Source: Bugula neritina (Eukaryota; Animalia; Bryozoa). Taken from it: DNA of 64,000 nt. This document shows positions 39,601 through 42,600 of the stretch, piece after piece; position 1 is the stretch's first letter; each line of letters starts with the position of its first letter. The notes beneath the pieces are model-generated. The model did not search any database. It was not told where the DNA came from and worked only from the letters and a program-made list of their open reading frames with translations. Location of the stretch: the NCBI GenBank assembly GCA_964035545.1, contig OZ037766.1, positions 4,640,722 to 4,704,721 of the forward strand. The letters are read 5' to 3'. A program made the position numbers and the translations under genes.

Positions 39601-42600
39601 AACGGAGATCACCACAAGATGTCCGATATCACCGCACCCAGTCATGTACATTACAAATGCATAGACCACACACCCTGTAAGGCAGTAACATAAATTAGAC
39701 AGTCAATAAAATAATATGTCTACAACTATATTATTCTAAAAATGGAGGTCAAGAAACTATGTTTAGACTACAGTAATGCTATTACAGCTCAAGTACATTA
39801 AAAAGTTGCACCATAATACCCTGAGTAGGTATAATACTAGGTTAGTTCCACACTCTAATGTATTCTACTTACTTATTACAGTTACCATAACAAAAATGTT
39901 AATAATATTAAAGTTAAGTCTTTGCCTTTGGGGGAGGGGGGCCTAGGCAACCCCCTGAACCCCCAGCCTGAGAGTATGGCCTAGAATATTTTTGCCACTA
40001 CACCCCTGTATATATATATATATATATATATATATATATATATATATATATATATATATATATATATATATATATATATATATATATATATATATATATA
40101 TATATATATATATATATATATATATATATATATATATATATATAGGTGACCCCTAGAGTCACTTGAGCACTCTGGCTTGAGTTTACACACCTTTTAAATA
40201 TGCTTTAGTAAAACTATAAGTTTCTACTATTGCGAAGGTGTGGGCCATGGTACTCTGTTCTGTGCTGATGAGGGGACAAATCCCGAAACAGCTGCTGTCC
40301 ACAGATTGAGATATTACGCTCTCATTTAATGCTCAGCAATGACATTAAATGATTGAGCACTCTCACCATGGTCACAAACTCAAGCTGCTAGCATTTTGCA
40401 ATGCTCGTGACTCCTAGAGTCACTTGAGCACTCTGGCTTGAGTTTACACACCTTTTAAATATGCTCTAGTAAAACTATATGTTTCTACTATTGCGAAGGT
40501 GTGGGCCATGGTACTCTGTTCTGTGCTGATGAGGGGACAAATCCCGAAACAGCTGCTGTCCACAGATTGAGATATATATATATTAATATATTTATATATA
40601 TTTATTTATATATATATATATTTATTTATTTATTTATGTATATTTATTTATATATATTTATTTATACATATATTTATTTGTTTATATATATTTATTTATA
40701 TATATATATATAATATTTATCTATTTATATATATTTATTTATATATATTTATTTATTTATTTAATTATGTATATACTGTAAAAACTCTGATTACTTAGTT
40801 TTTAATAAACAAATTTTAAATTTTTTTTAAAAATCATTTCATATACAACTGAGATTATTGGCACCTTTCAAAATTTCGACAGTAAACAATTTATCAATAA
40901 CTTGGGCTGAATGCATAATAATTACGTCAGCACATTAAATATACAGAAAAAGGCAACTCCCTAACCTAAGTATTTTGATACTAAAAATTTACAAATCATG
41001 AGCGTCATCTACACCTGTGGGGTTCAACTATACTCAGCCTAAAAATTAATGACATATAAAAATAGAGTAATGGCTATAAAATATTTCAACAGCTATAAGC
41101 TAGGAGTTGTGCTCACCTGTATCCCCAAAAGGCCATTTATGAGCAAAGCTGCTTATGGAGAACATGGTGCCTCCCACGATGGCCATTAGACCATCACTTA
41201 AAGCCAGGGACATCATCAGCCAAGTTGTCCTTGAGGTCATCTCCTTCCTGTACTTGGTGAACATTGCAAAGACGGAGAAGTTCAACACTATACCCATGAT
41301 GGTAATCAGTGCCAACAGAAAACCTAAAGGCAAAACCAAATTGTTGGGTAGACTACAGTTTTATTCTATGCTGCATTGATTTACGAGTCTATATTTATTG
41401 GTTTTAAGCTTTTTGATGGCTCAGCTTTTTTGTAAATGTTGCGGTTTGGATGCTTAAGTTAGATTAAAGTAGTTTCTTGCACACTAAAAATTGATAGCAA
41501 CTGGGTGAAGTCCTAAAATGATTTCATTCATTTGGACATAAAAATAAAAATATTGGAGCTGTTAAAAGTATTGAACTATTAAAATCAATTCTACAATTGT
41601 ATATAAACAAAAGATCATGCTTATATAGGATTATAGTGTTAAAAAGGTTCTTCAACGATGTGTTTATTATATAATATATTCTAATCAATACCAAATAGCA
41701 AATTAGTTGATTAAATAAATGTCCATTATCATGTGCATGCAGCCAAAATTGAAACTTTCACTTTTCATTTTAGCTATGAATTATACATTGACATGTATTA
41801 TTATAAGAGTCTTTTAATAATTATAGAAAATATATTTAGAGCTATAGATAGAAAACAAATCCTAAGTTCAGCAACAAGCCTGGCACATTGGATCCTTGTT
41901 TGTGGTACAAAATTAATATCTTGCTATATCATTCTAAGACCTACTAAATATTTTTGTATTATTCTAACATTATATTAATAATACTTGCATATTTTTATAA
42001 TGCCATTAAATATAATATATTTGCATATTTTTCTAGCTGTCACAAAGGTGTCCAACCTTTTCCGAGTGACGGCCACTAAAAGGGAATATTTCATGGCAAG
42101 GGCCACAATGTAAACTTTAGCTTGAGTGGGGGGGGGGGGGCACAACATCAGTATTTTTCCTATTATTTTGTTCCAATTTCATATGAACCGTTAAACAACA
42201 AAGTAACAATAGTTACTGCAGGCTGCATGTTTTGTAGCATGTTTATAAATAAGACATTTAAAAGGAGGTTTTTTATTCTAATTCATTCATACTGTGAATT
42301 TTTTTTTGTTTTATGCCTTTAAGGGCCACATAAATGTATGTGAGGTCGCATGTTAGACAGCCCCATTCTAGCACCTACCAAATATAAGATCAACGCTCTC
42401 CGAGAACCCTGGTAATACTGGATTAGGTGTTGAGTCATCATAGTCATCCGTACCATTGAAAAACTCTTCAAAACTATTAACATACAAATATTTAGTATAT
42501 AATTTGTTGTTATATAAGCCTAAATATTATATCAAACTTAGAAACAACTAACAAAGCTCCTTCAATGTCTAATACATTTTGTAGAGTTTAGAGAGTTCTG

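Follow-up and report, generated by a model that had tools for sequence, protein, structure and literature searches.

Metazoan retrozymes that lack long terminal repeats (LTRs) were defined by Cervera and de la Pena in 2020. These non-LTR retrozymes carry one type I hammerhead ribozyme per short (170-400 nt), AT-rich and non-coding unit, are dispersed as monomers to multimers, are predicted to form highly self-paired circles and coexist with hammerhead-bearing Penelope-like elements. Circular RNAs have been shown in coral, mussel and axolotl (PMC7229834). The proposed route leads from a primed circle to tandem complementary DNA, and Penelope-like elements are favoured as the source of the non-LTR enzyme that makes this DNA (PMC7229834). 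Here, a repeat is described that is located at positions 40146-40575 of a 64,000-nt stretch of DNA from the bryozoan Bugula neritina (assembly GCA_964035545.1, contig OZ037766.1, positions 4,640,722 to 4,704,721 of the forward strand). This whole stretch is called the window in the following. The repeat shares all the above-mentioned sequence features with the described retrozymes. It is most probably one insertion of a young, non-autonomous metazoan non-LTR retrozyme which was copied from RNA into a (TA)n microsatellite, presumably mobilised by a Penelope-type enzyme and presumably cut by its own hammerheads. Whereas expression and circularity have been shown for described retrozymes, they are predicted for the B. 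neritina family.

Penelope-like elements are biased to microsatellites including (TA)n (Craig et al., 2021; PMC8557442). With their pseudo-LTR hammerheads the repeat has in common the position of the hammerhead close to the 3' end, insertion as partial tandems and in head-to-head arrangement, and the (TA)n bias (PMC8557442; bioRxiv 10.64898/2026.07.22.740005). In a preprint, Penelope pseudo-LTRs are argued to be the origin of retrozymes (Li, Clavereau and Pollet, 2026; bioRxiv 10.64898/2026.07.22.740005). In contrast to Penelope-like elements, the repeat is non-coding and differs in sequence from the three Penelope-type tails compared below. Furthermore, its helices are ordinary-sized, whereas the motifs of these tails are more minimal.

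Newt satellite 2 and the axolotl retrozymes resemble the repeat in their weak helix III with a palindromic loop, and amphibian retrozymes need dimeric hammerhead motifs, according to the study that defined the class (PMC7229834). For the repeat, a double-hammerhead fold is likewise favoured in silico. The amphibian elements reach up to ~120,000 copies in long arrays in vertebrates, whereas only a few hundred short insertions are found here in an invertebrate. Plant LTR retrozymes (Cervera et al., 2016; PMC4918200) are likewise non-autonomous retroelements with a hammerhead-cut, circularised RNA, as proposed here. However, their hammerheads are of type III and located in LTRs, and they have a primer binding site, a polypurine tract, 4-bp target duplications and Gypsy-type mobilisation (PMC4918200), none of which is present here. 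Three properties of the B. neritina family are undescribed for retrozymes in the cited literature: the strict (TA)n target, the single 3' end 14-15 nt past the cut, and arrays that are mostly very short (at most 4 units in the sample).

Two hammerhead motifs in a direct repeat

Both strands of the window were searched for the hammerhead pattern CTGATGA-N-GAAA-N-GTC. Three matches were obtained versus 0.21 expected, and none of 100 shuffles used as control reached this number. Two of them, 40265-40299 and 40526-40560 on the + strand, are identical to each other. The third one (29448-29513, - strand) is without helices and was rejected as a chance match. Reading by hand revealed that the core of the identical motifs is canonical at every position: C3 U4 G5 A6 U7 G8 A9, G10.1-C11.1, G12 A13 A14, A15.1-U16.1 and C17. 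Helix I comprises 6 bp (TCTGTG / CACAGA) and is open, therefore the motifs belong to type I. Helix II has 4 bp and a 5-nt loop, and helix III, which contains the palindrome CAGCTG (CAGCUG in RNA), has 4 bp and a 3-nt loop. The predicted cut sites, after 40299 and 40560, are 261 nt apart.

A repeat search identified 40146-40575 as a 1.65-unit direct repeat. Its arms (40146-40314 and 40407-40575) are 169 nt long, 98% identical and spaced by 261 nt. Tandem Repeats Finder does not list the repeat because it comprises fewer than two copies. Except for spurious frames in TA runs, it contains no open reading frame (ORF).

The hammerhead structure of a single motif was calculated to have -10.1 kcal/mol, and -12.7 kcal/mol with an extended helix I. 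In silico, a homodimer with an intermolecular helix III folds 10.9 kcal/mol better than two monomers, and the palindromic helix III is predicted to favour a double-hammerhead fold. Circular monomers were folded and compared with 200 dinucleotide shuffles. The 261-nt circle yielded -89.4 kcal/mol (z = -6.6) and a 271-nt circle, corresponding to the family unit described below, -99.6 kcal/mol (z = -7.3). They are branched and 70-72% paired at a GC content of 43%. This means, folding predicts the stable and highly self-paired circle that belongs to the definition of retrozymes.

A young family with a 271-nt unit

A search of the 216-Mb assembly with the 261-nt monomer yielded at least 72 scored matches (713 candidates at first look), which are distributed over all large contigs. 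Most matches have a length of 271 nt, and a 10/11-nt indel lowers their identity to the query to 93-95%. The hammerhead together with the 14-nt tail was found 479 times in the genome (up to 3 mismatches) and the mid-unit junction of the 271-nt type 311 times, each versus 0 for the control, a reversed sequence in the case of the hammerhead. A natural copy, L007:1501-1771 (271 nt), serves as reference unit. Compared to a 271-nt unit, the complete unit of the window copy lacks 11 nt between two 11-nt direct repeats, near 40407-40420, and contains one additional nucleotide. This deletion junction occurs five times at four loci, on contigs C1, C2, C6 and C7. The copy on C7 (L002) has other flanks and another 5' end than the window copy and is, therefore, an independent insertion. 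The 260/261-nt form is a small variant lineage, or a recurrent slip between the two 11-nt direct repeats, and not the family norm.

Inside arrays, the unit spacing is exactly 271 nt, and no extra TA is found at the unit joints. Units of one array are 99.6% identical in the median, several of them 100%, and those of different arrays 97.7%. The median divergence from the family majority amounts to 0.7%. The family is young, dispersed and non-coding. It consists of short head-to-tail units with a type I hammerhead and a GC content below 50%, without LTR, primer binding site or polypurine tract, and its many dispersed copies bear the marks of retrotransposition. Apart from the young age, these properties are also part of the retrozyme definition.

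Insertion anatomy

The census comprises 62 insertions in 57 loci, out of ~480 family copies. At the 3' end, one tail is common to 56 of the 62 insertions, which terminate at GAGATAT, 14-15 nt downstream of the cut site. (TA)n follows 53 of these 56, precedes 40 and is present on both sides of 38. (TA)6+ covers only 0.3% of the window. The 5' ends vary and are found all over the unit; they are most frequent at certain TA-like sites, namely position 12 (9 insertions), 168 (5), 188 (3) and 267 (3). In BLAST alignments, some insertions seem to start at position 1, directly behind the cut site; the real starts are located 5-12 nt upstream, within helix III. After extension, position 1 is the start in a single case (1/62), L059, where the junction is ambiguous. 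Insertion lengths range from 0.1 to 4.0 units, with 19 below 0.95, 17 at ~1.0 and 20 above 1.1 units. Near-integer lengths were found for 14 of 56 insertions compared to ~6 expected.

A fixed 3' end combined with graded 5' truncation in (TA)n is the signature of target-primed reverse transcription. On the evidence of its insertion ends, the repeat arose from RNA that was copied in this way into a (TA)n microsatellite, from a fixed internal start and on a template continuing across the unit boundary. The copies reach beyond the cut site, which rules out the cleaved linear monomer as template. Both a ligated circle and an uncleaved multimer fit.

These data can be compared with a preliminary description of the locus made from the window sequence. 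It had reported two identical, complete type I hammerheads with cut sites 261 nt apart in a ~1.65-mer without coding capacity, as well as the minimal, palindromic stem III, all of which is borne out. Its assignment to the retrozymes agrees with the genome-wide hits of hammerhead plus tail and with the insertion ends (PMC7229834), and the suggested search with the 261-mer indeed revealed a multicopy element. The 261-nt unit, however, holds for the spacing in the window copy and not for the family, in which it is a rare deletion variant. Similarly, the released monomer, which according to this description could be circularised and retrotransposed, is ruled out as template in its cleaved linear form, whereas a circle fits as well as a multimer does.

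Penelope-like elements in the same microsatellites

At locus L057, a coding element and the repeat are situated tail-to-tail within one (TA)n. The end of the ORF encodes a Cys-rich linker followed in the description by a VIY...YIG block, in which the usual Arg and Glu as well as a CxxC are found. The 3' untranslated region (UTR) carries a minimal hammerhead with a palindromic helix III and a GUA site. For this ORF end, 851 candidate loci were found in the genome. They comprise sub-families of 99%, ~50% and ~45% identity, open frames of up to 740 aa and many head-to-head pairs. Atlas look-alikes of the ORF end carry HTH_animal and GIY-YIG. Public full-length relatives from other animals have 700-733 aa and sub-threshold GIY-YIG matches at the corresponding place. 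In their alignment, reverse-transcriptase motifs including the catalytic YxDD box are legible. The structure model of one full-length relative (predicted local distance difference test score, pLDDT, 80.5) has telomerase reverse transcriptases as its eight best PDB matches, with E values down to 4.9e-7. A telomerase-like reverse transcriptase with a C-terminal GIY-YIG nuclease is the architecture of Penelope-like elements (PMC8557442). Hammerhead-bearing Penelope-like elements coexist with the repeat, as the retrozyme definition expects.

Pfam searches on the L057 ORF and the full-length relatives returned nothing, or sub-threshold GIY-YIG, and a profile search against PDB sequences gave no match. 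In the genome, PF01541 (GIY-YIG) detects only an SLX1-like gene, which means that Pfam misses the Penelope-type nuclease. The best 150 matches of PF00078 (RVT_1) in the genome contained none of use.

Two other hammerhead-bearing families are listed in Table 1. A perfect palindrome of ~64 nt, representing a head-to-head junction, opens the second element, in which a decayed end of an ORF for the same type of nuclease as at L057 was also found. The third family (~150 nt) is often found in inverted pairs. In addition, L055:1464-1604 and L058:1338-2006 are short 5'-truncated stubs related to the L057 tail. Their hammerhead is mismatched at the second pair of helix II, and they adjoin TA-rich sequence.

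It was also considered that the repeat is a fragment or a pseudo-LTR of an autonomous Penelope-like element. This was rejected: there is no significant similarity to the three tails and no ORF next to any of the 62 insertions.

Proposed mechanism and alternatives

The following course of events is proposed. Transcripts of the + strand would be cut after GUC by the hammerheads, probably best as a double hammerhead formed via the palindromic helix III. The template would be a monomer that is circularised and copied as a rolling circle, or a multimeric transcript. The enzyme would be the reverse transcriptase with GIY-YIG nuclease of those Penelope-like elements that use the same microsatellites. 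As shown by the insertion ends, copying always started at an internal AUAU, 12-15 nt downstream of the cut site, with which a nicked TA repeat can pair. It then proceeded over a variable distance (0.1 to 4 units; 1.65 in the window copy) on a template without an end at the unit boundary. A long hairpin predicted just 3' of the start (40318-40358) might be a candidate recognition element for the reverse transcriptase. In its most specific form, this proposal regards the several hundred insertions as a direct genomic record of how a Penelope-type enzyme copies a circular ribozyme RNA by rolling-circle, target-primed reverse transcription. Nicked (TA)n would prime on one internal AUAU beside a long hairpin, and stops would be favoured after whole turns. 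We advance this specific form tentatively, as a possibility and not as an expectation.

The rival that survives best, although we judge it unlikely, is a linear parasite of Penelope-like elements similar to a short interspersed nuclear element, with no circle involved. Transcripts would read into the flanking (UA)n, and their TA tail would pair with the nicked target. Arrays would come from read-through multimeric transcripts, and the hammerhead would be a passenger or a trimmer, dispensable for mobility. Since copies end in (TA)n, a (UA)n-tailed transcript would be a natural primer partner, and the commonest class comprises almost exactly one unit, from ATAT (position 12) to ATAT, like a full-length linear element. 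Non-identical units in the window copy and in L002 also suit such an origin, and Naiad Penelope-like elements spread well without hammerheads (PMC8557442). On the other hand, the unit joints in arrays are seamless, with a spacing of exactly 271 nt and no variable TA run, and arrays of 2-4 identical units require an endless or multimeric template from the outset. Furthermore, a linear RNA would lose its priming site if the hammerhead cut it 14 nt before that site, and still the core of the master sequence has remained perfect.

Several observations weigh against the retrozyme reading with hammerhead cutting, a circular template and a Penelope-type enzyme. Three of them concern the ribozyme. Rfam found no family at gathering score in the whole window. 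The minimum-free-energy fold of a single motif is non-catalytic (-15.6 kcal/mol), with the hammerhead fold 2.9 kcal/mol above it. Conservation of the core is not in excess: among copies found regardless of ribozyme, the 13 core bases have 4 changed cells of 617 and the rest of the unit 69 of 8062 (p = 0.8). The other points concern template and enzyme. Between both units of the window copy there are 2-3 differing sites, possibly also the 11-nt indel, and, judged by these differences, age or a heteromeric template would fit better than a fresh rolling-circle product. A comparison of the repeat with the three Penelope-type tails (X, Y and Z) yielded chance words only and no significant similarity. 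Hence, the link to a partner rests on the common target and the insertion style only. The partner may be a Penelope-like element beyond the three tails compared. The linkage to Penelope reverse transcriptase/GIY-YIG ORFs suggested in the preliminary description thus holds for the shared microsatellites and the tail-to-tail arrangement at L057, but does not extend to the tail sequences.

As for the units of the window copy, the truncated first one (40146-40299) has zero differences to the family majority. A comparison of 40146-40160 with 40407-40421 shows that it begins within the 11-nt segment missing from the second unit and that its copy of the 11-nt direct repeat is the other one. Hence, the first and the second unit may belong to different types, which would imply a heteromeric template or a slip during copying.

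The three points on the ribozyme, together with the weak helix III, are what an improbable second rival can call upon, according to which the hammerhead-like motif is catalytically dead or arose by chance and the element is merely a short retroposed repeat. Other Rfam results point in the same direction. A permissive scan (E up to 10, 521 nt) yielded microsatellite noise only. The model RF00163, proposed at the outset as a check, does not reach its gathering threshold in the window or for the family genome-wide, so that formal membership by this measure is lacking. Across the genome it does not pick up the repeat family; its sole match is an unrelated, sub-threshold one, the hammerhead of the second Penelope-type element (L052:1501-1547; 25.4 bits, cut-off 34). 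As seen on another locus, the RF00163 consensus is bound to one particular helix II sequence that differs from that of the repeat. In a 63-nt scan, RAGATH-1-hammerhead was the best hammerhead model (19.1 bits, E = 0.15), and its alignment covers helix I, CUGAUGAG, CGAAAC, helix III, GUC and helix I. The sub-threshold score is read as a limit of the models.

Against a dead motif stand the 13 of 13 core positions including the pairs G10.1-C11.1 and A15.1-U16.1, the GUC site and three helices of usual size. The sole variant common to several independent insertions (6/47 copies) turns a G-U pair of helix II into G-C. In addition, at least three other hammerhead-bearing families occupy the same niche of the genome, and a weak palindromic helix III is a known mark of hammerheads that act as dimers (PMC7229834). 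As the core is not extra-conserved, conservation is silent on activity: the age of the copies is too low, and they evolve neutrally once inserted.

Satellite DNA spread by unequal crossing-over or segmental duplication without retrotransposition would explain the tandem head-to-tail layout and the several nearby copies at some loci, but is practically incompatible with dispersal on all large contigs, unrelated flanks, one invariant 3' end, graded 5' truncation, a specific target and the different 5' ends and flanks of two 261-nt-variant members on different contigs.

Host gene and surroundings

The repeat is located in an intron between the segments for transmembrane helices (TM) 1-2 and TM3-4 of a gene on the opposite strand (Table 1). 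The best matches of the TM6-TM7 segment are squid, spider and bovine rhodopsins, and its residues 9-66 align without gap to residues 257-314 of 1f88. Its Lys falls on K296 of bovine rhodopsin. Therefore, the gene is an opsin. It extends over 36974-41360 on the minus strand, has at least five exons and encodes DRL after TM3 and NKEHR after NPLLY. By its sequence motif, the latter resembles a ciliary or xenopsin-like tail, and not the rhabdomeric HPK. The opsin intron had been named before; as a location it is confirmed by Pfam 7tm_1 and the Lys, but it drops out as a source of + strand RNA. The repeat and the opsin gene have opposite orientations, hence + strand ribozyme RNA cannot originate from the pre-mRNA of the opsin. 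The window copy is most likely an inert passenger.

Apart from this gene, the window contains an unrelated ~200-nt repeat at 3098-3205, 9968-10180 and 14578-14793, which is common to L012, L021 and L045 at 72-83% identity. At 33238-33562, a long trinucleotide run gives rise to poly-Leu and poly-Cys open frames; this is simple sequence and no gene. At another locus (L035:913-4392, minus strand), a 1160-aa open frame encodes tandem repeats rich in Ser, Thr, Asp and Glu. It has no Pfam match and could be a mucin-like exon or a minisatellite. For a Nek4-like kinase, the best named relatives are proteins of amphioxus and limpet with ~80% identity.

Table 1. Features of the window and of loci with Penelope-like elements. 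Plain numbers are window positions; ECL, extracellular loop; ICL, intracellular loop.
Feature	Position	Strand	Remarks
Hammerhead motif 1	40259..40305	+	Helix I 40259-40264 (5' strand) and 40300-40305 (3' strand); core with helices II and III 40265-40299; cleavage predicted after C 40299
Hammerhead motif 2, same sequence as motif 1	40520..40566	+	Cleavage predicted after C 40560
(TA)68 microsatellite, upstream half of target site	40009..40144		Tandem Repeats Finder: period 2, 68 copies, 100% matches
First unit, 5'-truncated, to first cut site	40146..40299	+	Starts at ~116-118 of the 271-nt reference unit L007:1501-1771
Complete 261-nt unit between both predicted cut sites	40300..40560	+	
Predicted long hairpin just 3' of copying start (AUAU, unit positions 12-15)	40318..40358	+	Circular minimum-free-energy fold; position relative to fixed 3' end
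15-nt 3' tail CACAGATTGAGATAT, closing the insertion in ATAT microhomology with the target	40561..40575	+	Same end in 56/62 insertions
Degenerate TA-rich microsatellite, downstream half of target site	40572..40775		Tandem Repeats Finder
Opsin open-frame segment TM1-TM2, upstream of intron in gene direction	41103..41360	-	Pfam 7tm_1 E = 1.9e-5; translation
Opsin open-frame segment TM3-TM4, DRL motif, downstream of intron in gene direction	39406..39702	-	Pfam 7tm_1 E = 5.4e-11
Opsin open-frame segment ECL2-TM5	38741-38959	-	
Opsin open-frame segment ICL3	38327-38458	-	
Opsin exon TM6-TM7, Lys then NPLLY	36974..37171	-	Best PDB matches rhodopsins
3' part of Penelope-like element	L057:1969-3034	minus	ORF end, 3' UTR with minimal hammerhead, ~150-nt tail, then (TA)n
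Second hammerhead-bearing element	L052:921-1600 and L023:2331-3167		94% identical over 843 nt between loci
Third family, ~150 nt	L052:777-909; also L064, L065, L059, L023	minus (L052)	Minimal core CUGAAGA ... GAAA, ~100-nt tail ending in (TA)n

Concluding remarks

The kind of element and the proposed mechanism are already published (PMC7229834; bioRxiv 10.64898/2026.07.22.740005), and the B. neritina family is a further member. Taken alone, the window copy is of little weight, as it is an antisense passenger of a described class. The family, by contrast, provides a clean natural data set on where and how reverse transcription starts in retrozymes and Penelope-like elements: it is young, comprises a few hundred copies and combines one exact 3' end and a single target motif with the full range of 5' truncations and multi-unit products. 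If a circular intermediate were confirmed by RNA, the family would support the rolling-circle model and indicate a testable priming signal. If the insertions are indeed a record of rolling-circle copying, which the cited literature only hypothesises, they would define for retrozymes both the target and the site where copying starts, and would provide a hairpin as candidate for recognition.

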